64,000 bases of DNA from Haliotis cracherodii (lineage: Eukaryota). A model generated the notes under the pieces. The model ran no database searches. It had not been told where the DNA came from and saw only the letters and a list, made by a program, of their open reading frames with translations. The stretch lies in the NCBI RefSeq assembly GCF_022045235.1, contig NW_027266275.1, positions 73,966,001 to 74,030,000 on the forward strand, in the 5' to 3' direction. Below are positions 20,496-41,507 of this stretch, in pieces. Every line of letters begins with the position of its first letter. Position 1 is the first letter of the stretch. Both the position numbers and the translations under genes were made by a program.

Positions 20496-21080
20496 TTGAC
20501 TGAAACAATCTGGTTTAATTCATGTTTCTACTGTGGAGGTTGTGAGGGATGGAGGAGTTCACACAACAACGATGGCAAGAAGAGATATCTTACCTTTGCG
20601 TCAGCTGAAAAATCTAATAATTGGCAAGGAGGCAGCAGTGGTTATGACCAGGATTATTCGGATGTCAGAGTATATGAAAATGAATCTAGAAGTGATCCCG
20701 TGGCATGGTTTCTGTTCTCCCTGTTCAAACTCCATCCCGATTTTGATTTATTGTGGGGACAGGCATTTAGTACAACACTGGGTAAGAACCCTCTTGGTAC
20801 TATCATGCAGAGAATATCCAGAAAAGCAGATCTGTCGAAAGTGTACACTTGCCACTCTGTCCGAGCTTCAACCATCACATACCTGAACCACGCCAGAGTC
20901 GACACCAAGCATATCTGCAATATCACAAAACACAAGTTCGAAGAATCCTTAAAACATTACATTTCAGGATCCAGCAGTGCACAGAAACGAGCCTTGAATG
21001 AGGTTCTGCATGATGTCATTGCACAGAAGAAACCAACTTCAGCTGATGAATGTCATTCCGGTCACCATGTTGCTTCTTGA
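20496..21080 (+). mobile_element. Degenerate Crypton-type tyrosine recombinase fragment (DUF3504-like)
   Basis: IWFNSCFY..EGWR, NWQGG, LGKNPLGTIM..IS, YTCHSVR (HxxR), ITKHK..SLKHY (catalytic H and Y positions). Confidence 0.75.
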
Positions 21081-21910: not shown

Positions 21911-24429
21911 CCCGTGTGGACCCGGGGTGGAATATGTCCACAGCACCCCATTGCTGGTCGTAAAAGGCGACCAAATTGGGCAATCCGTTTGCCGTGGGTT
22001 GCGCCCCTGTGTCAGTCGAGGAAGGGGTTCTGGTGGTTGAGGGCACTGGAGCTAGGAACCGGTGTTCCATTTGCCCAACACACTACTTTGACCCTTATTT
22101 CACCTAGACGGGTGGAAGAATGGGCCCGATTCTATCAATCGGCTGGTCACGCATCGTTCTTGTTGACACTCGATGGCGGGTGGGGAGCAGAGGTATCGAA
22201 TTAAATAATCACACCATGTCTCACTACAAATCTCCTGGTTCTTTCAAAGCAAACAAACGTCGTCATGTCGATTCTGTTTCCTCTGACGATGAGGTATAGC
22301 CTATTGTTGCAGATTCTTGGCCACGATTCATTGTTATCGCATCGGTCGATGAAACTCCTTTAAAACTTAATCCGTTTGCCATATCAAAGGGCATCCAAAG
22401 TACTTGTGGTGAAGTGAAGAACGTTACTCATCTTCGTTCTGGTTCCATACTTGTGGAATGTGCACGGAGATAGCAATCTATCAACTTGCTGGGTCTCCAG
22501 CAGTTTGTGAACACGCAGGTTGCTGTCTCAGTGCACAGGACACTGAATTCTAGTCGAGGTATCGTGAGAGATCGAGCACGATGTCTTTCCGAAATGTCCG
22601 AAGAAGAGATTGCAGCTGAACTTAAACATTAGGATGTCACCGCTGTTCAGCGATTCACGCGAAAAACAGGAGATGGAAATATTATTAAAACCCAAACATA
22701 TCTTTTCACATTTTCAACGTCTACTGTTCCATCATCAATTAAAGCTGGATACTATAACATCGGCGTGGAGGTTTATGTACCAAATCCACATCGATGTTTC
22801 AAGTGTCAACACTTCGGTCATGGGGCCAAATCTTGCACGGCCAAGACGAGGCGCTCCCGTTGCAGTGGTCCCCATGAGGGCACAGAATGCACAAATGAGA
22901 TCAAATGTGCTGACTGCAGCGGTGAGCACTTGTCTTCGTCAAAATCATGCCCGAGTCCAGGTAAACAAATCACCATGACATCCACTCACTGTCAGACTGA
23001 TATGTCGTGGATCAACAATGACCAAGCACCTAAATTATCTCTATACAAGCCATCAACAATGCCGTCTTCATCTCAAACAGAAAACCTGCAACCTTCACAT
23101 GGTCAACTAACTGAACCAGAATTTATACAGGAAACCGAATCAGTTCAGGGCGAAGCCCATCTATCCAAAAAACAAACAAAATAGAATACCAGACAATAGC
23201 TCGATTTTCACTGCTGAGGCCAATGCTATTCTTACAGCATTGATATACATTCAACAACAGTCTGCATGTAAACAATTTATCATCTTTTCTGATTCTCTTT
23301 CTAGCCTTCAGGCACTAAATAATGTATCTTTGACTCATCCACTGATTTCAGATATTTTAGAACTTTACAATGATCTTTCAAATGGCCAAAACGACATCGT
23401 CTTTTGTTGGTTACCCAGTCATATGGGCATAAAAGGTAACACAATGGCTGATGCTGCTGCAAAGGCAGCACTCAACAAATCTGTGACACCACTTCTTGTC
23501 CCATACAGTGATTACAAACCTGTGATTCGATGTTACATCCGAGATCTGATTCAAAAGAAGTGGGACACCCAAGCAGGTATGAATAAGTTACATGAAATTA
23601 AACCAAATATTGGTTACACCTACTTGGGTTGTCAGTCCAGATTTGAAGAGGTCATTCTACGACGATGTCGTATTGGCCATTGTAGATATACGCATGAATA
23701 TGTGTTAAAGGGTGAAGATCCTCCGTTTTGTATCCCTTGTGATGAGAGAATCACAGTCAAGCATGTCCTTTTTTTACTGTATTGATTTTTACATTACAAG
23801 GGATAAATATTTCAGTGTGAAAACCATTAAGGACCTTTTTAGCCATGTCAATTCACGTTTAATCATTAACTTTTTAAAAGATATAGAACTCATTCACACA
23901 TTTTGATGTAAAAAGATATGTATTTTATAATTCGGTAGTGTATAATTAGTAACTGAGGCTGTTCGTGGCTGTACCCTCGACAGGGGTTGAACTAGTGTAA
24001 AATTATTGTCACCCTGAGAGGGTATGTAAGACCACCTCTTTCAAAGTATATTTATATCTACCTCCATTTTAACTGCAGAATATTTGTTAACTTTAAAGCT
24101 CTAGCTAAACTCGCAATAATCGCCAGTAACTTGGGTAAGTGTAAAATCCTGCTGGGGAACCATGCAGGTAGCAGAGGAACCGTAAGTCCCCTTGGTCCCC
24201 AGTAAGGTGATTTTAACTTTGTTGCTGGCGATCTATAGCCCCATTTTCATATTGTGTCGTACCTCAATAATCAGATATTTTAAATGTTCTACAACTAGTC
24301 TTAAGTCAATCTGTGATATATTGCTAGTTATTATACTGTCCTTTGTCAACAGTTTTTATAAATATTGTATAACTTGCTCAAGTCACATTATGGCTGAAAT
24401 ATTGCCGACTTTAAATTGAACTCACTCAC
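21911..24429 (+). mobile_element. Internally deleted I-group (Nimb-like) LINE: 5'UTR, disrupted ORF1, RNase H and C-terminus of ORF2, 3'UTR
   Basis: ORF1 zinc knuckles CFKCQHFGH and CADCSGEH; RNase H motifs SIFTAE, FSDSLS and WLPSHMGIKGN; C-terminal CIPC..TVKH; ends aactcactcac. Confidence 0.88.
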
Positions 24430-25278: not shown

Positions 25279-26037
25279 CCAGCCTTGATAGATTAACTAT
25301 AGTAATATGAATGAGAGTTCTTTAACTTCTTTTGAGTAGTATGTATTCATGATGCTGTGTAAGTGGTGCCAAGGTTTAAAGATGTGAAATTTTGTGATGT
25401 GAGCCAGGAAATAGAAAATCAGCTTCATAAGGAAACGTATTTGATTACTTAGGGCTAAGATTAGTTTCAATATTTAAACTCTAACAGTTGTAACAAATGA
25501 GACACAAAAGAACCATGGCATGTTGGATTTGTTTTTCAGGGTTAGACCAATATAACCCTTAAGGGCGCAAACCAGACCAATGCAATAGTAAACAATTATT
25601 TTAGACGATTTCCCTAAGCTTTCAATGAAACTATTCAGCCAGTTTGTCCTTTATTGAAGAGATTAAAACAATACAACAAAATAAGTGACTGATAGGTGTA
25701 GAACGTAACACTAGCCCACTAACCTGGGCCTAGCACAAATTCTCCCACTTCACCAATGTTTTAACATTACAAGGGCATTTTATCTTTAACTGGGCTAGTA
25801 AAGCTTTTGACTTTAGTTCTAAAGCTGACTGAGACTTTATATTTACCACAAGCGATGTAAGCTCTAACCTGATTGTAAATTAGTGATCCTGTGCCTCTTT
25901 TCTCAAAACAAACCTAGAAACTACTGTTAGTCCACACTTAAACATAGACTTATGACAGAAGTATTGTCACCTAGTGGACCAGTGTAAGAACACCGATGGA
26001 GATCTTGATGAACATGTATGTCAATGGTCATGATGAC

Positions 26038-26822
26038 TATACAGGGATGCGAGATGCTCATGGCTGAGAAACCAGGTTCCCCTTGGCCTATACAGGGATG
26101 TGACTCTCAGGGCAGAGGAACCAGGGTCTCCTTGGCCTTTACAGGGTTGTGACACTCAGGGCAGAGGAACCAGGTTCTCCTTGGACTTTACAGGGATGTG
26201 ACACTCAGGGCAGAGGAACCAGGGTCTCCCTGGACTTTACAGGGATGTGGGACTCAGGGCAGAGGAACCAGGTTTTCCTTGGCCTTTACAGGGTTGTGAC
26301 ACTCAGGGCAGAGGAACCAGGTTCTCCTTGGACTTTACAGGGTTGTGACACTCAGGGCAGAGGAACCAGGTTCTCCTTGGCCTTTACAGGGTTGTGACAC
26401 TCAGGGCAGAGGAACCAGGTTCTCCTTGGACTTTACAGGGTTGTGACACTCAGGGCAGAGGAACCAGGTTCTCCTTGGCCTTTACAGGGTTGTGACACTC
26501 AGGGCAGAGGAACCAGGGTCTCCTTGGATTATACAGTGATGTGACACTCAGGGCAGAGGAACCAGGGTCTCCTTGGACTTTAAACGGGTGGTGAGACTCG
26601 GGGCAGAGGAACCTGGTTCTTATATGGGGATGTGAGATGCCTAAGGCAGAGGAACCAGGTTCTCCTTGGCCTATACAGGGATGTGAGACTCAGGGCAGAG
26701 GAACCAGGTTCTCCTTGGCTTATACAGGGATGTGAAATGCTGAAGGCAAAGGAACCAGGTTCTCCTTGGATTATACAGGGATGTGACACTCTCAGGGCAG
26801 TGGAACCAGGTTCTCCTTGGCC
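26038..26822. repeat. 49-bp minisatellite containing the IFT56 exon-17b terminal codons and stop
   Basis: Minus-strand unit CCAAGGAGAACCTGGTTCCTCTGCCCTGAGTGTCACA(A/T)CCCTGTAAAG.; the first unit overlaps the CDS end. Confidence 0.92.
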
Positions 26823-26906
26823 CACTTCTTCATGGTCCTGATGATGTACTCCACCTGTGGGTTGCTGGTATTACGCAGCATGTTGATGACATCACGCAGC
26901 ATCTCC
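26792..26906 (-). CDS. IFT56: IFT56/TTC26 terminal exon 17b (distal alternative)
   Basis: tttTAG acceptor, phase matches exon 16; EMLRDVINMLRNTSNPQVEYIIRTMKKWAKENLVPLP*. Confidence 0.85.
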
Positions 26907-27287
26907 CTAAAACAGATCCCACATGACACAACATGACACAACACACAGTCAGCATGCAAACAGGACATGGACAAAGACTTGAAACAAATCAGAGGTTTGG
27001 TGGACAATCAGTTTCGATAGACAAAATAAGATGCATTGATTGAGACTTGTGTTGCTCCAATACAGCAGGAACCGGTACTACTCATGCTACACTCTACAAG
27101 TGTCCTGGAACTACTGCATCTAGCTGCTGAAGAAGCAGGTGATATTGTGATGGTGCCAAGGACGAAGCAAACAGTGCATGATGGGACATGTAATCAATGG
27201 TGAGTGAGGATGATAGAAATGTATTTACTAAGTGTGCCAGGGTACACACAGGGATGTTTAGTGTGCCCTTTGGAATAAAAACATGCC

Positions 27288-28272
27288 AAAAGAAATAATA
27301 CATAGTTTATCTTCAGACTCTGTGCACACTGTGACCCAAAAGAAGTGTACATTGTTCATCTTCAGATTTTGTGAATGCTGTGACCCAAAAGAAGTGTACA
27401 TTGTTTATCTTCAGGCTTTGTGAACACTGCGACCCAAAAGAAGTTGAGGTGAGGTGAAATGGAGCTTAACGCCGCGTCCAAGATTATTGCACTTATGTAG
27501 CGACGTGCATGCAAGTGTATCTGTGTGTGTGGCTGCTTGTACTAGTCTGGATTGATGCCGATTTATAGTGCTAGCTCACTGAGATACCATGCCACAGTTT
27601 AGCATTAATATCCCACTCAAACACAGTATACTGACTCCGAGCTAACCAGTCCTTGTTTTCTCCCCTTAATGCAGAGCGCCAGACAGGGTAACAACAAGTA
27701 CCATCTTTAAACGTCTCTTGGTATAACGCGGCCAGGGATCGAACCCCGGACCTTCCGCTCTCCGGACGCTCTACCACTAGACCATGGAGGCGCTCCACGC
27801 AAAAGAAGTAATACATAGTTTATCTTCAGACTCTGTTGTCACTGTGACCCAAAAGAAGTGTACATTGTTCATCTTGAGACTCTGTGGTCACTGTGACCTA
27901 AAAGAAGTGTACATAGTTTATCTTCAGACTTTGTGGACACTGTGACCCAAAAGAAGTGCACATTGTTTATCTTCAGACTTTGTGAACACTGTGACCCAAA
28001 AGAAGTGCACATTGTTTATCTTCAGACTTTGTGAACACTGTGACCCAAAAGAAGTGCACATTGTTTATCTTCAGACTTTGTGGTCACTGTGACCCAAAAG
28101 AAGTTTACATAGTTTATCTTCAGACTTTGTGAACACTGTGACCCAAAAGAAGTGCACATTGTTTATCTTCAGACTTTGTGAACACTGTGACCCAAAAGAA
28201 GTATACATAGTTTATCTTAAGACTTTGTGAACACAGTAATCCAAAACAAGAAATTCACAGTTTATCTTCAGA
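27288..28272. repeat. 49-bp minisatellite interrupted by a SINE
   Basis: Unit cattgtttatcttcagactttgtgaacactgtgacccaaaagaagtgca. Confidence 0.9.
27445..27799 (-). mobile_element. tRNA-headed MetaSINE-like element, family C
   Basis: Head gcctccatggtctagtgg...ggttcgatccc; core gactggttagctcggagtcag...agtgagctagcactataaa; flanking duplication caaaagaagt. Confidence 0.85.
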
Positions 28273-28442
28273 CATTGTGCCATTCATGGTTGTAATTGTG
28301 ACTTTAGCAGTAAAGTACAAGTAATTTTGAAGCCTGCCAGGTTGTTCAATGTTAGAAACAGTGATGAGGATGTTAGTTGGAGGCCAATGAACAGAAGGAA
28401 GTGAGTGAAGGGGTAGACAGTAGCCAACAAAGGCAGAGTCTG

Positions 28443-28554
28443 CTAGACATGAACTTTGTTGTCTCGGGCCCATTTTTTCATGGTCCTTGTGATGTATTCC
28501 ACTTGTGGATTGCTGGTGTTTCTCAGGAGGTGCAGAACTTCACGCAAGTTTTCC
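28443..28554 (-). CDS. IFT56: IFT56/TTC26 terminal exon 17a (proximal alternative)
   Basis: Polypyrimidine tract plus CAG acceptor, phase matches exon 16; ENLREVLHLLRNTSNPQVEYITRTMKKWARDNKVHV*; absent from the ORF track. Confidence 0.88.
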
Positions 28555-30590
28555 CTGGAGAGGCAAACAGGACAGCCAAGTTACTAGCAAGCCTGCGACC
28601 GTCATGCTGCGCGACCAACGCTGGAGGTGCAAGGATCCCTGCAGACTGACCTCAGCAAGTTACATCACTATTCCACCAATTTGAAGAGTTGAAGGATAAT
28701 TGTACACCAAGTCATCAGTAACTATCCTTGCACCTCCAGTGTAGGAGATCTATTGGGGGAGGTGTGGGAGGGGAGATTGTGCCTTACATTTAGGCAGAGG
28801 AAGAAAGTTAGAAGAGCATGATCAGTCATGTTTGTAATCATGGTTTTATAGGGTAGTCCAGAGGTCCTTGAGGTGATGAGCTCCATTGCTGAGTTCCATT
28901 TATTTCTAATTTTTACAGTGGCATTAGGACAAAGGCCCCATTGTGCCATTATTTTGAAAACTGCAAGGAATTAACAGAGATAGGCATTTGTGATGAAATA
29001 CCATCATAAGAATTTCATGAACATAATTCTAAATATGATGTATTAGCTGTATTGGAGCCATGGGAGACCAATAGTGGGGTATATAGCATCATGTTGTTTA
29101 ACTACACATTACTGGGCAGGGGAGGGGGAGGGAGAGTGGGGAGGGCGAGGGGAGAGAGAGGCTCTAGGGGAGTAGCTGTTAGTGAAAAGCAGGTATCAAG
29201 GGGAGGAGGCGAAGCAGTGGTTGTTAGTAGGGGTCAGTTGTCAATAAGGAGCTTATATAATTTATGATCCAAAACCAAAATAGACTGAACTACATACCTA
29301 CATGTACATGCATTTACTAAACCGGTAACGGTAGTGTTGGACTCAGACACACATGGTACAATATTTGGGAAAAGGGCTCAAAATGTCAAATCTCTCAGCA
29401 TTCTCTGCGTACAGTATCTGTCCACTGTGAGTGTCACCTTCCATGTCCCAACACTCCAGCTAGGTCCTACACAGGCTGAGAGTTATGGCCCTTATTACAC
29501 AAGGGTCAGCAGACACAGATGCTTGTGGCCAGTGATGGATCAACGTGTTAGTTAAATAACAAAACATGAATAAGAAGTACAACAGGTCAAATCTTTTTGT
29601 TTCTCTTTTTGGCTTCACTTGAAATACAATGTCCTCCATTATCCACCCATCATTACCCAATGTATTAAATCTCAGTTCTATTAAGATATATGCCCTGGAC
29701 ACATTTGCTACCATAACTTCGTTTCAGAAGCAAAACACAATCTTCATCTCTCATCATTAACTTGACACAGAATTTCTATTGCTCATGAGTGTAATCAGAT
29801 GTTAGTTCTGTTGTGTCATGCAAAGCGTAACATGAGCTGTCTTTACAAATCATCTTCCCGAAGCAAGGCTGAACTAGGCTGAACTGGGCTGGAATTATGG
29901 CGTTATACTCTGGCTGGACTAATGAGTCTATGCATAGTCCAATCAAAATTTTCTATTGCAGGATTTGAAAAACATGTGTACTGTCAACATGCTGTCAGCA
30001 GAAACTTTTGAAATCTTTTCATGTTTTTAATCAAGGTGGGTCACGTGATTTGATGCACTTCGAAAAGTAAGACCCGTTTCACTACAATATAGATCTTGAT
30101 TATCAATCAGATCGCCTTGACTAGGCGCTGCCATTTTGTTTGAAGCAAATGTAATTGATATGAGAGGTGGAATCTGATTGGTCAATAGGGACACAGAAAA
30201 GACATTCTTGTAATAGCCATTGGTGGCGCTACGATTAAGCCCAGAAATTCCAGCCTAGTTTGGTAAGGGTGGAAACTGGACCTTTTACAGTCAGTTAACT
30301 CCCTTGCCTTTTGAAGATGTTACAAATGGGCCCAGGGCATTTCCCAATAGAAAGGTGACATAATACACTGTAATCGAGGATGCCAGGCTACCTAACATGA
30401 CACTTTCTTGAGGGATGCCATTACACAATATCTGCATACCTGACATACCTTGCCCAATACTAAACGAGGTTATCTTGTGGCATCACAAGGGTCCTACTTC
30501 AATCCCTGGTTTCCTAGGTCCATGTGGTTCTATACAGGTTAGTCAGAGAGTACTGAGGTATTGACATGTGGTCATCATCTGTGAACTCAC

Positions 30591-30724
30591 CTCTGCTCAT
30601 GTCCGGCAATGATCATCTGGAACACGCCGACACAGGCGCCTCGCTTGCCCTCCCAGTACTCAGGGTTGGGGTCCAGGCGTTCCAGAACATCAAACGCTTT
30701 AGCTGCATAGTAGAACTGTCCCAT
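30591..30724 (-). CDS. IFT56: IFT56 exon 16
   Basis: [44 protein letters not shown](R); CAG acceptor, GTGAGT donor. Confidence 0.95.
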
Positions 30725-31350
30725 CTGGTGCAACACACAAGGACACATAGTAGTTAGCAGTTCTATATACTGGTAGTAGAACTGTCCCATCTGGTACAAC
30801 ACACAAGGACACATAGTAGTCAGCAGTTCTATATACTGGTAGTAGAACTGACCCATCTGGTGCAACACACAAGGACACATAGTACTTAGTAGTCAGCAGT
30901 TCTATATACTGGTAGTAGAACTGACCCATCTGGTGCAACACACAAGGACACATTGTAGTCAGCAGTTCTATATACTGGTAGTAGAACTGTCCCATCTGGT
31001 ACAACACACAAGGACACATAGTAGTCAGCAGTTCTATATACTGGTAGTAGAAATGACCCATCTGGTACAACACACAAGGACACATTGTAGTCAGCAGTTC
31101 TATATACTGGTAGTAGAACTGTCCCATCTGGTGCAACACACAAGGACACATAGTAGTCAGCAGTTCTATATACTGGTAGTAGAACTGACCAATCTGGTAC
31201 AACACACAAGGACACATAGTAGTCAGCAGTTCTATATACTGGTAGTAGAACTGACCAATCTGGTACAACACACAAGGACACATAGTAGTCAGCAGTTCTA
31301 TATACTGGTAGTAGAACTTTCCCATCTGGTGCAACACACAAGGACACATA
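30708..31350. repeat. 66-bp tandem array of the exon-16 acceptor plus its first ~6 codons
   Basis: CAG|AT junctions at 30724, 30790, 30856, 30929, 30995, 31061, 31127, 31193, 31259 and 31325. Confidence 0.95.
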
Positions 31351-31898
31351 GCACACAAGTGACATAGCAGTGAATGAGTGAGTGAGGTTTAATGCCGCTT
31401 TGAACAGTATTGTAGTTTAATTATCATAATTATGGCATGTCACCTTGATGTGGGAGGAAAGTCCGAACTGATGCAGGTCTTATCTATTACCACTTTGATA
31501 ACTAACAAGCAGGGGTATGGTACTGACAAACCAAGAATCAAAATCAGAGTCAATATGTATCTTAACCTATGATCCTAAGTTCCTGGCATGCCTTGGGGAC
31601 ACGACTCTGCACAAGAGAGGTGCCCGTGGAGACAGGCGAGAAAGAGGCATTGAGACAGAAGTGTACGATCCTCAGTCAGTGGTTCAACAAACTCCAAATC
31701 ACATCTACCAAAGTTGAGGCAAACATAATCATCAACATGATGAAGGGCACTGATGAAGAAGTCTCCTCAAGGCTGCCATACACACAATACACAAACTGTT
31801 AACCAATAACACATTGTAGTCAAACCAAATAAATTGGTGTCCTCTATCTTGATATTAGATACCCGACATCAAGCGTGAGTATGTCAGGTGCAACTTAC

Positions 31899-32005
31899 CT
31901 TGTAGCAGTCATTAGCAATGAGCTGCAGCAGGCTGAACGACTCCCCCGACGTCTCCATCTTCAAGTACAGCTCCCAGGCCAGCCTGGCCTTGTGGTTCAT
32001 AATAT
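31899..32005 (-). CDS. IFT56: IFT56 exon 15
   Basis: (Y)[35 protein letters not shown]; CAG / GTAAGT. Confidence 0.95.
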
Positions 32006-32084
32006 CTGGCAAATACATTGAGTGAGTGAGTTGGGTATGAACTGTTCTTTAGTCAAGGTCTGTGAGCTTAATGTGGGAGAAGGG

Positions 32085-32215
32085 GGCGAAGGGGTAGCGT
32101 AGTGGTAAAAGCAATCGCTTTCGGGTCCCCACACGAGTGCAATGTGTCTGGTGTTCCCACCATGATATTGCTTGAATATAATTGCTAAAAGTGTCGCAAA
32201 ACCATACTCACTCAC
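32085..32215 (+). mobile_element. Degenerate family B SINE
   Basis: ggggtagcgtagtggtaaaagc...gatattgcttgaat...aaaaccatactcactcac. Confidence 0.6.
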
Positions 32216-32569
32216 TGACGTGGGAAAGGTCATATGGATTCGGGATGTGGATGCTTAACACTGCGGTGAAATTGAGCATGGTCAGGTGCTGACAAACCTA
32301 GAATCCTTATCAGGGCAAATCTTGGTAGCTAGCCCATGGGAACAGGATTCTGGCATGCCAAAGGGAGGCAAATCTGCACAATGACTATTTCCTCCCATGG
32401 GTAACTGCCCCACCTGTGCTATCAAACATAGGATGGCAGAAACAGTAAAGAAGCCTGGGAAACATTTCAACATTTCTTCAGCTATCCAACATGAGCAGTG
32501 TAACCAAATTCACTGGTCATAAGACAATTGTCCAGATGAGTGATGGGGGTAGTGACAGTGATGACTTAC

Positions 32570-32639
32570 AACATCGGGCCAGCCAGCTGAGGTAGGTGTA
32601 GTCATTCTTCACCTTGTCGCTCTGTATCAGCATGAAGAT
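32570..32639 (-). CDS. IFT56: IFT56 exon 14
   Basis: IFMLIQSDKVKNDYTYLSWLARC; TTTCAG / GTAAGT. Confidence 0.93.
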
Positions 32640-33029
32640 CTGAAACACACAAGTATACTGAACAGCATTCACCTCCTACAGGAATCCTATCTCAAGTAGA
32701 GGTTGGTGCTCTACTGGATACCTTGCCATTTGACAACACAAGTCCCTCTGTGGGTCTACGATGTTTATTCTATGATATCACGCGGCTACACAATAACTAT
32801 GATCCAGTCTCCAGTAAGCATCTCCCTGTAGGTCGGCCAACCCCTCTCTCTGCTTTCCCAGGGTCAAGTCTGAGCAAATACAAAGCTTTGTCCATTTATC
32901 CCTAAGGGGTGAATCATGGTCAGACATGTCTTTCAGCCTGCTGTATCCAGCACCTCGTCCAGAATGTCACGCTTCAATGACTACACTGTGAATACCTAAA
33001 TCCCACCAACAATACTGGTCTCATACATA

Positions 33030-34192
33030 TAATCTGAAACACAGACATACATGACAGAATTCACCTGTCTCACACAGACACCATCTGAAACACAAACAGC
33101 ATTCACCTGTCTTACACATGCACCATCGGAGACACAAACAGCCTTCACCTGTCTCACACATACACCATCTGAAACACAAACAGCATTCACCTGTCTCACA
33201 CATGCACCATCTGAAACACAAACAGCATTCACCTGTCTCACACATGCACCATCTGAAACACAAACAGCATTCACCTGTCCCACACATGCACCATCTGAGA
33301 CACAGACAGCCTTCACCTGTCTCACACATGCACCATCTGAAACACAAACAGCATTCACCTGTCTCACACATGCACCATCTGAAACACAAACAGCATTCAC
33401 CTGTCTTACACATACACCATCTGAGACACAGACAGCATTCACCTGTCTCACACATGCACCATCTGAGACACAAACAGCATTCACCTGTCTCACACATGCA
33501 CCATCTGAGACACAAACAGCATTCACCTGTCTCACACTTGCACATCTGAGACACAGACAGCCTTCACCTGTCTCACACATGCACCATCTGAGACACAAAC
33601 AGCATTCACCTGTCTCACACTTGCACATCTGAGACACAGACAGCCTTCACCTGTCTCACACATGCACCATCTGAGACACAAACAGCATTCACCTGTCTCA
33701 CACTTGCACATCTGAGACACAGACAGCCTTCACCTGTCTCACACATGCACCATCTGAGACACAAACAGCATTCACCTGTCTCACACTTGCACATCTGAGA
33801 CACAGACAGCCTTCACCTGTCTCACACATGCACCATCTGAGACACAAACAGCATTCACCTGTCTCACACATGCACCATCTGCAACACAAACAGACACGTA
33901 GGCTTTCACCTGTCTCACACATACACCATCTGCAACACAAACAGACACGTAGGCATTCACCTGTATCACACATACACCATCTGCAACACAAACAGACACA
34001 TAGGCTTTCACCTGTCTCACACATACACCATCTGCAACTCAAACAGACACGTAGGCATTCACCTGTCTCACACATACACCATCTGCAACACAAACAGACA
34101 CGTAGCTTTCACCTGTCTCACACATACACCATCTGCAACACAAACAGACACGTAGGCATTCACCTGTCTCACACATGCACCATCTGAGACAC
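33030..34192. repeat. 41-48-bp minisatellite in IFT56 intron 13
   Basis: Unit acagcattcacctgtctcacacatgcaccatctgaaacacaa (42 bp); 83-bp dimer at 33532/33615/33698; longer variant units after ~33870. Confidence 0.93.
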
Positions 34193-34246
34193 ACATGGTA
34201 TTGGTATTGTCAATGTCAAGATGACCTGATACAAGACTCCACCCAC

Positions 34247-34330
34247 CTCCTCTGCCTCCTTGAAGTTCCCCACGGCTGCCTTGGCTTGAGCGTAGTTGAA
34301 GTTAAACATGTCGTCATTGTAGAAGTAGCT
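34247..34330 (-). CDS. IFT56: IFT56 exon 13
   Basis: SYFYNDDMFNFNYAQAKAAVGNFKEAEE; CAG / GTGGGT. Confidence 0.95.
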
Positions 34331-34532
34331 CTGTAACACAGAATGCTGTGTCAGCATATCTGATGCCGCCATGGAAAATGCTAGTCTACACAACCATTTA
34401 ACATTTTTTCTGGGTTTATATACATGGGAAATTTGAGATAAATTTAACCTGGTGATACACCTATTGAAGGACACTATGTGCCCATAGCATAGAATTCTCA
34501 ACACTTTACTGAAATACAGGTCGCCCACCCAC

Positions 34533-34621
34533 CTTAATGGAGTTGAGATAGATCAACACATCTTCAAACTGCTTGAGAAGGAAGAAGCACTCCGACATGC
34601 ATTGACGCCCGGGGATGGTAT
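34533..34621 (-). CDS. IFT56: IFT56 exon 12
   Basis: (D)[29 protein letters not shown]; CAG / GTGGGT. Confidence 0.95.
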
Positions 34622-35051
34622 CTGTGGCAGAGATATGTCCAACATTACATCTCCACACACATATAGTGTCACAAGACTTACGGTAAGGTATGACGTGATG
34701 TCTGATATCTTTGCATACTGTAAAAATTCACGTTAAACCATTCAAAGTTACAACAGTAATTGATTTGATAAGTAATGTGCTGTCAAACCGAGCAAAAACC
34801 ACCAGGCCACACTCTGAGATTCAAATCCAGGATTCTGGCATGTCTAAGGGACGCAACTCTGCACAGCAAATAATGGTGCCTCATAAGCCTTAGCTATCTG
34901 TACCCAATGTAAACAACATATATTCCAGACCTACTGGCAAAGTGTATTCAACATGCTTAGTTAAAAATAATAATAGCCATGCTGTAATAAGAGTTAAATG
35001 AAAATCAGTTTTAGGTGAGAATACATGACTACCTATGACCTATGTACATAC

Positions 35052-35115
35052 CACATTCACTGGCTGAGCCTCCCACCAGCTGAAAATACTGCTGTGCTAT
35101 TTTCAAGTGCTCTCT
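35052..35115 (-). CDS. IFT56: IFT56 exon 11
   Basis: REHLKIAQQYFQLVGGSASEC; CAG / GTATGT. Confidence 0.95.
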
Positions 35116-35652
35116 CTGTAAACAGAATACAGGGCTTACATGAGCATTCCAGCCACATGTCGCACAAGTTACATAATCATATTGAAAAAGAAATCAATAA
35201 ACATGATAAATGACATCAGTTGTACTTGGCTAGCCCACCAATTCTGTGTAATATCAACAAGAAACTAATGAATATTATCATCATGAACAAGGTTTAATGT
35301 CATTTGACACACAATCATCCAAGTCAATGAATCTGACGAGCCGTCACTGAATGTCCCATAAATCTTGCGTAGGTTCCTGGGGACCTTTCCTAACATTTAA
35401 ACCATAATGATGACGTCTCGTAATTATTTGTGCAGTTGATTCTGAGCCAGGAATTCACTGGCCATTCTGAACTTGCATCTTAAACAAGTAAAACTGATGC
35501 ATCTATAATGCAAACTTTTAGATGAATTATACATCAACCATAATATGGTTTAAGTCAGAGAAACCACTTGAATCTGTTGATTCCAAAGAAGAATCAACTC
35601 ATCAATCTGGGACTCGTTGATTCAAGGATGACAATAGACACGGAGTACATAC

Positions 35653-35762
35653 TGAGCCCTGCTCCTGTCCGAGAGCAGCATTCACGACTCCCTTGAGAAT
35701 GTACTCCTGGGGTGTGGTGGGTTCCAGGTCTCGGATCAGGTTGTACGCTTCAGCCACATCAT
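35653..35762 (-). CDS. IFT56: IFT56 exon 10
   Basis: (D)[36 protein letters not shown]; CAG / GTATGT. Confidence 0.95.
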
Positions 35763-36295
35763 CTGTAACACCAACACTCACTGCTAGATACAACACACCC
35801 AATGTAAGGTCTGGTATTTAACTTTTTCTGAGATCAAAGACCTGACTACCCCATCCATAAGTTACTAACTACTGCACCAAATTCATACCACACGACCACT
35901 ATTACTACTACAAATAATGGTAAGCAATGTTTTAAAGTATTGTAGCATTTCACTGTCGGGGTCGTGTGTGTTCAAGATGCAGAATATTTAAAGATTTTCT
36001 TTTTGTTCGAAAATGGATATAAAATTGAAACGTGCAGCGGACTTCATGATGATGCGGCAGTGCCTGAGAACCAAGAATATTTTGCATCCATTCTGTATAT
36101 TTGTGCATAGGATGCACATGTGTGCGTCGCATAAAACCCAGAGTCTATGACTCTTGGCTGCATCACTTCACATTGAGATTGACTGCAAATATGTCAATAA
36201 AGGACTCAAATACACGACAGAGCAAGATGCGCAGTGGATGCAAAATCAGCAGACATCGTAACAAGGAAACCCTGTGAACAGGAAGCAGCACCCAC

Positions 36296-36398
36296 CCTGC
36301 TTGAGGTAGTATATCACCAGATTGAGCCGAGCTTCAGGGATGACATCTATCAGTGGAGGTAACACCTGGAGAGCCCCCTCACCACCACGGAACACCAC
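36296..36398 (-). CDS. IFT56: IFT56 exon 9
   Basis: [34 protein letters not shown]; TAG / GTGGGT. Confidence 0.95.
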
Positions 36399-37329
36399 CT
36401 AGGATGAGAGACAGGAAAGTGTTGCTAAAAACCTAATCCATCCCGGATCTTCGCAGGTCGTGTGTAATGAGGCCCGGACTGACGTACACTGACTACAGAC
36501 TTACTGAACATACATAATGTGGTTTCTGATTCATTGATGAACCCATTAGTGTATAATGAGGTTTTAGCTCAACGTCAAACACTGGCTGAATGAATGTTGA
36601 CATTGCAATTACTGATTACCTATACCTGTATACTACCATGTAGTAACAATGAGGTCTTGGCTGAATGAAGATTGTGAAATACTACACTAAAATTCAGATA
36701 AACAGCCTGACCAGCAAATGTAATACAGTAAATTATGGTTATAATGAAATCTTAGGACCACTAATTTTAGTTTGTAATAACCGTAGTTCGTTATATCGGT
36801 CAGTTCCTTATAAGAGTGTTTGTTATAAATGTAGTTTACTGTATATTGGATGTCCAGGTAAAAAGTTTACACTCGGCTGCACAATAAAGTTAACCTGTTA
36901 ACTACAGATGACAATTATGTATATTCATGTTATTTTAATTCAGAACAAGCTTACATGAATGAAGTGCCATTAAGAACTTCTCCCTGACCTGAGCAAGTAT
37001 TATTTGTTGTTTTATTAACTAAATGAAATAAATAAAGACAATCAGCCAAGTCGTAGGACGTGTATATTTCAGTAGTTGACTATTGGAAACACAAACAGTC
37101 TGACTTAGATGGTCAGGCTGGTTGGTATCTTAAACATTGAATTTGTAACTTAATTATTAAACGAACCAATGTTGTATGATGAGATCTCTGGTGAAATACT
37201 GGATGACTGAACAAAGATACTGCAATAACTATTGAACCAATATGTACAATGGTGTCCTCTGGCACAGGCTAAAAACCCTGGTGATGAATGTAGAATACAT
37301 GTATGGAATAACTTGCTGTACCCACATAC

Positions 37330-37404
37330 CAGATTATGCTTGATGAGGTCCCGGGCGAAGGTGAAGGACGGTGACGACATCTCTTGCAGAGCCTTTAGTT
37401 CCGC
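37330..37404 (-). CDS. IFT56: IFT56 exon 8
   Basis: AELKALQEMSSPSFTFARDLIKHNL; CAG / GTATGT. Confidence 0.95.
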
Positions 37405-37528
37405 CTGAATATGAAGCAATTACTATTACCATGACGACAGCCACTGAAGGAACACTATCTACAGGAGGTACATAAACACTAGATCACATCTGTAGGTGGT
37501 ATTCATGGCTATATATTAGTGACCAGTA

Positions 37529-37872
37529 AGTGAGGTGAAATGGGGTTTAACGTCACGTCCAAGATTATTGCACTTATATAGCGACGTGCATGCACGTGTG
37601 TGTGTAGCTGCTTGTACTAGTCAGGACTGATGCTGATTTATAGTGCTAGCACACTGAGATATCATGCCGCAGTTTAACATGAATACCCCACTCAGACACA
37701 GTAAATTGACTCCGAGCCGACCATTCCATGTTTTAGCCCCTTAATACCGAGCACTAGACAGGGTAACAAGTACCATCTTTTAACGTCTTTTGGTATGACG
37801 CGGCTGGGGATCGAACCCCAAACCTTCCGCTCTCCGGGCAGGCGATCTACCACTAGACCATGGAGGCAGTTA
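37529..37872 (-). mobile_element. MetaSINE-like element, family C
   Basis: 11-bp TSD agtgaccagta at 37518-37528 and 37873-37883; homologous to 27445-27799. Confidence 0.88.
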
Positions 37873-37934
37873 AGTGACCAGTAGATGCCTGACAGCTAAA
37901 GCAGGGCAGTACAAAGCTAGGATATCCATCTGTG

Positions 37935-38080
37935 GTTTGTTTGTTGTTCAAAGCTGCACTAAGCAATACTTCAGGTGTATCATAACGCCTGTTAGTAATC
38001 GAGTCAGGACCAGACAATACAGTGATTGATATTATGAACAACGTCTAACGCAATCAACCAAGTCTAACCACCCGATCCAT
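37935..38080 (-). mobile_element. Degenerate family A fragment
   Basis: gtttgtttgttg..agcaatac..taatcgagtc.ggaccagacaat..agtgattga..ccacccgatcc. Confidence 0.6.
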
Positions 38081-38277
38081 TCTCACTTGTCGGTTGCTGG
38101 GGACCCCATAGGGACACTGCTATAGTGGTTACAGTCAATAAGATTGTGGGAACTTTATCAATAATATCATACAGATACTACAACCAGTATCAAATGTCCC
38201 ACCAGCGTTATACAAACACTGGTCCTACAGTCCATTGCTAGTAATGACTTGTTGATTGCCAGTGATGACCTACTGAC

Positions 38278-38379
38278 CTCTGCAGCCTTGCCATTGTACA
38301 GACGGAAGTGGTTGCAAGCTTTCAGATTGAGAGCAATGGCGCTGTCTGGAAACTGCTGTAGGTAGACTGCCAACACTTC
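38278..38379 (-). CDS. IFT56: IFT56 exon 7
   Basis: [34 protein letters not shown]; TAG / GTCAGT. Confidence 0.95.
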
Positions 38380-38768
38380 CTACAGAAGAAAACAGAAGTC
38401 TGTGATCGCAGAAGGAGACTGAGAACAGAGACAATAATGACTTAACTTTGAGAAACGTATGCATCAAAATAATGCTCAATGTTAATTTGGGATTTGAGTT
38501 CTTCAATTTCAGCAATCATTCATGATTATATAAACATTTCTGTTTACATCTTATATTTTCAACACACATATATTAATGGTATATGAAGTGATCCTAATTT
38601 GTATATAAGAAAAAGGAGACTGAAGGTAACAGCTGCATAGTGCTATGTCCCACTGCTTCAGAATAGCCGACATTAGAGCTATATATGAGTGATATTGTGT
38701 GATCTACTTCTTGGGACTGCATAATGCTGACAGACATGTGGCTGGATCAACATGGAGATGGTTCCTAC

Positions 38769-38838
38769 CTGTGACACATCGTAGTAGTCCAGCTTGTAGT
38801 AACACAGCGCCACGTACACATTCAGTGCCAGGAAGTCT
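38769..38838 (-). CDS. IFT56: IFT56 exon 6
   Basis: (R)DFLALNVYVALCYYKLDYYDVSQ; CAG / GTAGGA. Confidence 0.95.
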
Positions 38839-38969
38839 CTGCAAGAGGAGAGAGCGTTCATGTGATACCTATCTGATATCTGATGTTCATAGATAATGCA
38901 GTGTAAAATGGAGTTTTACACACGTGAACAAAGAGTAGCTCTGTCATTTCACATCCAAAACACATCTGT

Positions 38970-39440
38970 GACATTTATAATATATGTTTTGTGTAGTTGT
39001 CTACCTGAAAATTAAATTATTTCATAACAAATGTAAAACCTTGAAACATAAATTCTCCCTTCTAACACCCCATGTAATTGCGACTTAAAAAATAGTTTCG
39101 TGTTTGCAAAATCTTAAAAAATATAAACAAAAGTATCAAAAAATATTTAGTGACACGAAAATTCTTTATGATATATATCATTATGATAATAATTACAAAA
39201 TCAACTTTAACAAAAAATATTCTTAAAAACTAGCAGACCAATGATGGAAGCGAAAGAAAACACGTTGGCCAAGTACAAAAACGGCGCCTTGCCAAACAGT
39301 CTTGATTGACGAGTTAAATGAGAAATTTACAGTTTATAACAAATTATATTTCGAGAGAATAACAAACTGCAAGAAGTGATATTAACCCCATAAATATGTT
39401 ATTATTTTGCCTTGTCAATGTGGAACTAACGTAAAAAGGA
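38970..39440 (-). repeat. Second copy of the dispersed repeat at 425-770
   Basis: Reverse-complement block matches to 425-770. Confidence 0.7.
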
Positions 39441-39845
39441 TGTCAACAGTTCGTGTACGGACTAGACACCTACGATAAAGGGAGACGATTTAAGGAGAGG
39501 TAACTCTTGTATGACAATAGTTCCATCAAAGTGTTATGTTCACTGCATTGAAATATCAAGTGTTATGTTCACTTCAATGAAAATATCTTTTCTCAACTTC
39601 AGAAAACTCAGTCTTTCCCACTGAAGTAAATAATAAAATACTTTGTTTCACACTTGTGCATGGAAACAATGCTGCAGCACACCTGAATACAAGCAAATAA
39701 GGATTTATTTTTAAATATGCCAGTTTAGGACACAAAATATTTGGAAATGCTATGGACACAGTTTAAAATCCTAGATAAATACCACATCAGTAAATCAGTA
39801 AAGTAAACACAGACAAACTATTGTCAGCCATCTCATATTTCTGAC

Positions 39846-40041
39846 CGATTATCCAGCAGGATGCGCTTGTAGATGTCGATGGCCTCTTGGTAGTGTGAGC
39901 GAAGGTAGTGGATGGAGGCGAGGGACAGCTGGTCCTCGATGATATCCTGCAGGGCCTGGTGGTGGCCCATCAACCGGCGCTCATCATTGAACTTGTGAGA
40001 CAGGTGGAACTGCAGGCGGTTCTGAAGGCGAGTCTTGGGAG
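39846..40041 (-). CDS. IFT56: IFT56 exon 5
   Basis: (S)PKTRLQNRLQFHLSHKFNDE...SHYQEAIDIYKRILLDN(R); CAG / GTCAGA. Confidence 0.95.
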
Positions 40042-40538
40042 CTGAAAGCAGATATAACATCAAAAAGCTGGTACTACCACTGTCTGTTTGATAACTCTCT
40101 GTTTAGAATGGGCTTTGCATATGCTGATGTTCAAGAATACTCCATAAACTCACAATAAATTATGTCAATGTTCAACTAGTATACATGGTAATTATTGGTA
40201 AATCAATCACAGCATTAGAAATTGGCACCAGTCCTATAGCCCTTGCCAAACTGCCGAATAGTTAAGGTATCATAAGGACTAGTGGAAATTTGCCATTTTT
40301 AAGGGTTTTGTTATATGTATTCATTATAAGTACTAGTGGAGTAAAACTGTTAGTTTCTATCGCTGAGTCTTGTTCACTGCATACACAAAGGTAAATTATT
40401 TACTAGCTTTCTGATACATGTTGTATGGTCAGACCTGTTAGAGACAACTAAATATGTATTACGTCCTTTAAAACAGATGCACATGGTCACAAATATCGGT
40501 GTTTCAACTCCGGTGCTCAAGAGACAACAGGTACTCAC

Positions 40539-40653
40539 ATCGTGCTACAGCTGTGTCAGCATCCGAATACATCCCTAGGAAGAAGTAGCAGCAGGCTAGG
40601 AAGGCAAAGATGTCAGGATGACAGCCATCTCTCTTGGACAGCCTCTCGTATTC
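40539..40653 (-). CDS. IFT56: IFT56 exon 4
   Basis: EYERLSKRDGCHPDIFAFLACCYFFLGMYSDADTAVAR; CAG / GTGAGT. Confidence 0.93.
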
Positions 40654-41074
40654 CTGGACACAAACTGTTGGTGTTAGTCAGTGAAGACATACCATCTACT
40701 CATCTGTTGTGTGGTGTCATGTAAGATTGTGTATCATACTCCTGGGTACTGTTGTACAAAACAACCTTAGCACTATCTTAAGGTATGGGAGTTACCTTAG
40801 CAATAAGATCGCATTGTACAACACTTGGCAATTCAGAATGAGGCCCCTAATCGCCAGCACATAAAGTCAGTGATCTAACCCACTCAGCCACCGAGACTTC
40901 CACAAAATGGAAGTCCAACAACTGGTAGCCTATATCCCATACTTTGTGTACTCCTCTGACAAGTGTAAACTAAAAGGTGTATTCAATACTAAGTTGTCCT
41001 CAACCATGCAAGAGTTGTCGCCCCTGTTGTGTTATCTCAGCTTTGCAATAGTAGATGGTGTTTGATCTACATAC

Positions 41075-41167
41075 CTCCATAGATCGTTTGTAGTCTCCCA
41101 GGTGGAAGGCGCAGTAGGCAATCCACATGTCTACTTCTTCATTTCCCTTTCCACTGTTACGACTAAA
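41075..41167 (-). CDS. IFT56: IFT56 exon 3
   Basis: FSRNSGKGNEEVDMWIAYCAFHLGDYKRSME; CAG / GTATGT. Confidence 0.95.
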
Positions 41168-41369
41168 CTGCAAGTAACCATGGTGACACAAATTTAGAAA
41201 CAACAATGCAAATGCAGCTGTGGACTTCAGTCTCACAGGAGTACATAAAATACAGTTCATTAAATGACTTCAACTGTGGAAGAAACATGAATACTTGATG
41301 ATATAAGTTAATCCGCAAGTGTGGACATTAGTTGGAAAAGAGCCAGACAAGGTAGCATAGGCTAGGTAC

Positions 41370-41507
41370 CTCTAGCAGAGTGATAGCTCCGGTGTAATCT
41401 CGCGCTGACAAGAACTCGTCTAACTTTGGAAATTTCTTCTTCTTCTTCTGTTCCTTTCCTCCTGATGCGGCCCCCGGCCCCATGGCCGGCTTCATGCGTG
41501 AGAGCAT
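41370..41507 (-). CDS. IFT56: IFT56 exon 2
   Basis: MLSRMKPAMG...PKLDEFLSARDYTGAITLLE matches the TTC26 N-terminus; CAG / GTACCT. Confidence 0.93.

Follow-up and report, generated by a model that had tools for sequence, protein, structure and literature searches.

We report that the IFT56/TTC26 gene of the black abalone, Haliotis cracherodii, most probably is a single gene with two tandem homologous last coding exons, here named 17a and 17b, from which two proteins differing in their C-terminal hairpin would be made. The analysis was carried out on a window of 64,000 nucleotides, which is the whole stretch of DNA under study (assembly GCF_022045235.1, contig NW_027266275.1, positions 73,966,001 to 74,030,000 of the forward strand), and on IFT56 sequences retrieved from other animals. 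Sequence comparison places the duplication of the exon before the gastropod-bivalve split, with both copies kept under constraint since. All positions given below are those of the window.

Methods

Related IFT56 sequences were collected by two kinds of search, of which the one with exon 16 as a query returned mostly genomic read-through fragments, and the one with full-length protein returned named IFT56 proteins. A protein search with the a-type end (see below) of Batillaria yielded 10 candidates only, and a search with region 58-107 of P0099 retrieved sequences resembling those of intron-poor protists, with no mollusc-like ends among them. Coding exons were located by tblastn of full-length IFT56 proteins against the window, and the search for further copies of the last exon, with this exon only, covered the whole 1.18-Gb assembly.

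Two trees of exon-17 peptides were compared. The first contained 54 peptides, with a signal of only 37 columns; from the second, five long or compositionally odd rows were left out (Argiope, Trichoplax, the a-types of Biomphalaria and Physella, and Acanthosepion). Groups for the tests of a deep origin were named after the sequences had been seen. For the protein fold, the a-type isoform of Littorina was modelled with AlphaFold2 (mean pLDDT 78.6).

Results

The IFT56 gene and its two last coding exons

Full-length IFT56 proteins gave about 15 collinear exon matches in the window, running from 41423 to 26798, with 76-79% identity to lophotrochozoan IFT56 proteins, and this ordered similarity along the whole TPR solenoid marks the gene as an IFT56/TTC26 orthologue. 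A GHEQR motif of gastropod type agrees with the origin of the sequence. No second copy of any other IFT56 coding exon was found nearby in the same tblastn search. The features of the locus are collected in Table 1.

Table 1. Features of the IFT56/TTC26 locus (window positions)
Feature	Position	Strand	Remarks
IFT56/TTC26 gene, first recognisable coding exon to exon 17b stop	26792..41423	-	tblastn
Exon 16	30591..30724	-	44 codons + 2 bases; acceptor AG 30726-30725, donor GT 30590-30589
Exon 17a, proximal alternative last coding exon (a-type)	28443..28554	-	36 residues + TAG 28445-28443
Exon 17b, distal alternative last coding exon (b-type)	26792..26906	-	37 residues + TGA 26794-26792
17a stop to 17b acceptor	26907..28442	-	3' UTR of 17a form and/or intron of 17b form
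49-nt minisatellite, 16 units	26040..26822	-	predicted 3' UTR of 17b form
First canonical AATAAA downstream of 17b	25650..25655	-	1136 bases past 17b stop; sequence pattern only

Exon 16, the first 43 residues of which are 100% identical to exon-16 fragments from other animals, ends in CAG AG followed by gtgagt, and carries two bases over to the next exon. Both last exons take this carry. Exon 17a starts at 28554, preceded by an AG (28556-28555) and a pyrimidine-rich tract, and is translated from 28553; exon 17b starts at 26906, preceded by an AG (26908-26907), the pyrimidine tract being weaker here than at 17a, and is translated from 26905. Their coding lengths are 111 and 114 bases, respectively. 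A preliminary description of this locus had called both exons intact, each with a good acceptor, the phase required after exon 16 and a stop of its own, and our reading of the minus strand gave exactly the same peptides and agrees on each of these points. Being adjacent, of equal phase and of near-equal length, 17a and 17b form a tandem pair of homologous exons. They are not internal mutually exclusive exons, as both carry stops and no credible donor is located past 17a.

Two further observations were made around the gene. Upstream of exon 16 (30708-31350), the acceptor and first codons of this exon are repeated in 66-nt tandem copies; a fragment from another species (P0001) carries a like repeat with three extra copies of the first residues of exon 16, and such repeats may recur in other animals. 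Downstream of the gene, on the plus strand (20496-21080 and 22765-23785), there are open frames resembling mobile-element remains, by their appearance zinc-knuckle gag-like, RNase H-like and possibly a recombinase.

Divergence and constraint between the two exons

The two exons encode the same residue at 25 of 34 aligned codons, and in 10 of these 25 cases the codons differ, which confirms by count what the preliminary description had noticed. Base identity amounts to 74/102 (73%), with dS of about 1.8, dN of about 0.19 and a dN/dS ratio of about 0.11, a value indicating constraint. When the 28 substitutions were placed at random, nine or fewer residue changes were obtained in about one of 100,000 trials (~1e-5). 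The copies differ in GC3 (0.56 vs 0.81), both values lying inside the range of the gene's other exons. In pairwise alignment the likeness ends at the exon borders and the flanks do not align. In the entire assembly only two copies of the last exon are present, adjacent to each other and both in the IFT56 gene, and a third one was not found. Taken together, the 73% identity, the bias towards synonymous changes, the unaligned flanks and the presence of two copies genome-wide rule out that one copy is a haplotig, a young duplicate or what remains of a second gene.

Each exon has close orthologues of its own. Exon 17a matches the a-type end of Batillaria at 31/36 residues and that of Littorina saxatilis isoform X3 at 30/36, and 17b matches the b-type ends of Patella and of Littorina X2 at 34/37 each, while the direct match between 17a and 17b is only 25/36. 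Purifying selection and conservation in other species are thus seen for both copies separately. The earlier proposal of an old duplication with both copies constrained is well supported by a dN/dS of about 0.1, by this conservation of each copy among its orthologues, and by the position of 17b in the mollusc b-type group of the tree described below.

Two types of IFT56 ends in other animals

Retrieved IFT56 ends fall in two classes, 17a-like (a-type) and 17b-like (b-type). Ends of the a-type often contain an EYITRT motif and in most species have an NKV-type tail; b-type ends read LRDV, two variable residues and MLR (LRDVINMLR in molluscs), and their tail closes with VPVP or VPLP. The consistent a vs b differences among molluscs are E vs D at position 5, H/Q vs N at position 8, K/T vs L/M at position 33, and a length of 36 vs 37 residues, the first two positions and the length holding for a-type ends in general.

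In at least 10 related species one and the same gene is annotated with isoforms of either end. Among gastropods these are Littorina saxatilis (X3 with the a-type, X2 with the b-type end), Biomphalaria glabrata and Physella acuta; among bivalves, the scallops Mizuhopecten, Pecten and Ylistrum, as well as Mytilus trossulus; among nemerteans, Tubulanus and Lineus. The annelid Owenia fusiformis has four transcripts, two per end type, and a comparable pair of ends is present in three species of amphioxus (Branchiostoma). That the isoform pairs come from single genes is indicated by their 'isoform X' names, mostly consecutive accessions and location on the same chromosome. The annotations have more than one source, as they comprise RefSeq isoform models and separately deposited models of Batillaria and Owenia; the sole Batillaria model carries the a-type end. 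For some of the relatives' isoform models, prediction instead of RNA may be part of the basis. There are also contigs barely longer than the coding sequence, with either end type, which look like spliced transcripts. The b-type is the end of most assembled transcripts and models, and the a-type is perhaps the minor one of the two. The preliminary description had postulated mutually exclusive last exons giving two isoforms, which it supposed might be specific to cilium types or sperm; the annotation of both ends in at least 10 relatives speaks for the two isoforms, but the exons have to be regarded as alternative last coding exons and not as a classical internal pair.

In a metagenome scan none of 80 loci contained both exon types. 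Bivalve-like metagenome contigs have a b-type exon about 790 bases past exon 16 with no a-type exon between, in contrast to the window, where the a-type exon is the proximal one, and bryozoan-like contigs have an a-type exon only, followed by 3.6-4.9 kb of empty downstream sequence.

The a-type ends of Biomphalaria and Physella (P0302 and P0263) diverge far more than all others, sharing 13-15 of 36 residues with the b-type end of their own species, and are suggestive of rapid evolution or of a newly acquired role in the freshwater-snail lineage. Littorina X1 (P0320) and Babylonia X1/X2 (P0317, P0321) contain an extra insert of 21 or 13 residues between exon 16 and the b-type exon; a search of the window for sequences corresponding to that of Babylonia X1 (13 residues) and that of Littorina X1 (21 residues) found none.

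Age of the duplication

In the tree of 54 peptides the mollusc b-type exons, including 17b, form one clade (support 100/96), and 17a is joined to the Littorina and Batillaria a-types (93/85). After removal of the five rows 17b remained inside the mollusc b-type clade at 94/85, and the grouping of 17a was supported at 95/84. The arrangement of 17a and 17b as sisters was rejected in the AU test (p = 0.009). Grouping of 17b with mollusc b-types and of 17a with gastropod a-types, together with this rejection, makes the duplication older than the gastropod-bivalve split.

For an even deeper origin the trees are suggestive only, since there are 37 columns and the groups were named after seeing the sequences. 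In the second tree all a-types, i.e. those of molluscs, nemerteans, Owenia, bryozoans and amphioxus, are located on one side of a branch (94/89), while in the first tree the lophotrochozoan a-types obtained 48/73, and 50/72 with the amphioxus a-types added. Separate origins were not rejected for molluscs (p = 0.28), Owenia (p = 0.20) and amphioxus (p = 0.48), and a separate nemertean origin was marginally rejected (p = 0.022). We regard it as possible, without favouring it, that a single duplication preceded the split of molluscs, annelids and nemerteans and is maybe common to amphioxus as well; two proteoforms would then have been kept for more than 500 million years, perhaps for different cilia or cargo, and one of them lost in vertebrates, echinoderms and some others.

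The encoded hairpin

The Littorina a-type model is an all-helical solenoid that closes with the part encoded by exon 17: two final helices, at 520-529 and 535-549, followed by a tail of five residues, at pLDDT values of about 87-91. Among relatives, a solved structure is available only for Chlamydomonas IFT56 (PDB 8bd7). According to the literature, IFT56 is located in the vicinity of IFT46 and IFT70, on the outer 'tail' of IFT-B1, which is flexible, and it has been linked to inner dynein arm cargo (PMC10191852, PMC9753473). As exon 17 corresponds to the last two helices and IFT56 faces cargo, the choice of the exon would exchange the TPR hairpin at the very end of a cargo-facing subunit, and such a swap may alter partner or cargo binding.

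Sequences downstream of the two stops

Neither AATAAA nor ATTAAA occurs in the 1536 bases that separate the stop of 17a from the acceptor of 17b. Variant hexamers are present, namely AGTAAA at 27229, TATAAA at 27567 and GATAAA in each minisatellite unit. The only GTRAG in this interval is a GTGAG at 27579, 860 bases past the 17a stop and inside a SINE-like insert. Transcripts with 17a would either be cleaved at a non-canonical poly(A) site upstream of 17b or extend as far as the distal site, in which case 17b would form part of their 3' UTR. The reading of 17a as a cassette exon looks unlikely.

Unit 1 of the 16-unit array downstream of 17b consists of the last 17b codons, the stop and the first UTR bases, and in most units the coding tail with its stop is still recognisable. 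In Ruditapes and Mytilus the b-type tails match that encoded at the end of 17b, so that the exon end is the source of the array and not its product.

Past 17a there is a second, unrelated 49-nt minisatellite (27286-27444 and 27800-28279, about 13 units in all), which is split by an insert of 350 bases (~27450-27800). This insert belongs to a repeat dispersed through the genome in very high numbers, and looks like a SINE with a tRNA-like head. A first look at the genome gave over 7,700 candidates for it, and the 39 further copies that were scored show 90-92% identity; no tRNA was called in it by ARAGORN.

Discussion

The arrangement described above is best accounted for by a choice between two acceptors, and nothing else would be required for the protein outcome. 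The donor of exon 16 would be joined either to the 17a acceptor, 2.0 kb downstream, or to the 17b acceptor, 3.7 kb downstream, and each exon would supply the last two TPR helices, a short tail and a stop codon. Two IFT56 proteins would result, alike except for the C-terminal helical hairpin. Both exons are inferred to be spliced in black abalone. In different ciliated cells the two hairpins might tune the binding of partners or cargo by IFT56, a peripheral, cargo-facing IFT-B1 subunit.

Three other explanations were weighed. It is improbable that 17b alone is used and that 17a has become a relic, out of use and decaying slowly, in this lineage. Such a relic would agree with the dominance of b-type ends among gastropod proteins and transcript-derived contigs, with the lack of a canonical poly(A) signal downstream of 17a, and with the SINE and minisatellite just downstream of it. 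However, 17a retains an open frame in the right phase and a good pyrimidine tract in front of its acceptor AG, its differences from 17b are mostly synonymous, and its likeness to the expressed-type a ends of Batillaria (31/36) and Littorina X3 (30/36) is hard to reconcile with neutrality, the divergence being too old for a neutral relic.

We give very little credit to the view that 17a is an internal, stop-containing exon spliced on to 17b, which would yield a regulated and possibly NMD-targeted transcript and no second protein. The single donor-like site that could serve it lies far past the stop, within the SINE, and the purifying selection acting on the 36 codons across molluscs, nemerteans and Owenia is not expected of a pure poison exon; the absence of a canonical poly(A) signal between 17a and 17b is what such a transcript would have in its favour. 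An assembly error, or a recent duplication of part of the gene, as the source of the second copy has nothing in its favour beyond the existence of two similar exons, and is already refuted by the base identity of 73%, the unaligned flanks, the unduplicated state of the other IFT56 exons nearby, the absence of a third copy from the genome, the occurrence of an equal pair in other phyla and the AU test, which rejects a recent origin.

IFT56 is the IFT-B subunit associated with the carriage of motility components, inner dynein arms among them, into cilia. It is not yet understood how a single transport machine supplies cilia of very different kinds, and a conserved pair of C-terminal hairpins would be a natural handle on this problem in animals with motile larval, gill, sensory and sperm cilia. 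The pair is conserved across molluscs and seemingly in other phyla, and is a modestly interesting lead for cilium biology. As regards annotation, the abalone IFT56 gene model should keep both ends.

Human TTC26 has only one such exon. Vertebrate IFT56/TTC26 and Chlamydomonas IFT56 (PDB 8bd7) share the TPR solenoid with the abalone protein, and their final hairpin is very similar to that encoded in the window. The preliminary description, which gave the vertebrate end as akin to 17a in its first half and to 17b in its last residues, came close to the real ends: IFT56 of tortoise and sheep has LREVLHLLR in common with the first helix of 17a and WAKEN in common with 17b. No alternative end was found among the retrieved vertebrate, echinoderm and cnidarian IFT56 proteins.

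The same description considered the arrangement undescribed. No report on exon duplication or alternative last exons of IFT56/TTC26 was found in searchable papers, and to this extent the statement stands; the relatives' RefSeq and GenBank models, however, already carry both ends. In the isoform pairs of Littorina saxatilis (X2/X3), Mizuhopecten yessoensis (X1-X6), Mytilus trossulus (X1/X2), Tubulanus polymorphus (X1-X4) and Owenia fusiformis (CAH1795127-130) the last 36/37 residues are swapped likewise, and 17a and 17b fall into the a and b classes of these models, which are automatic annotations. The pair is therefore already present in automatic gene models of relatives, and the abalone locus is a further case of tandem-duplicated alternative exons.

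Substitution of tandem duplicated exons, or mutually exclusive use of homologous exons, is a known kind of arrangement (PMC8373072, PMC9741552, PMC5740500). Like the exons described there, 17a and 17b are homologous, adjacent, of equal phase and near-equal length, ancient and constrained, and they swap one structural element. Unlike the classical cases, in which the exons are internal and both copies have donors, 17a and 17b are terminal and carry their own stops, so that the choice between them also sets the 3' UTR.
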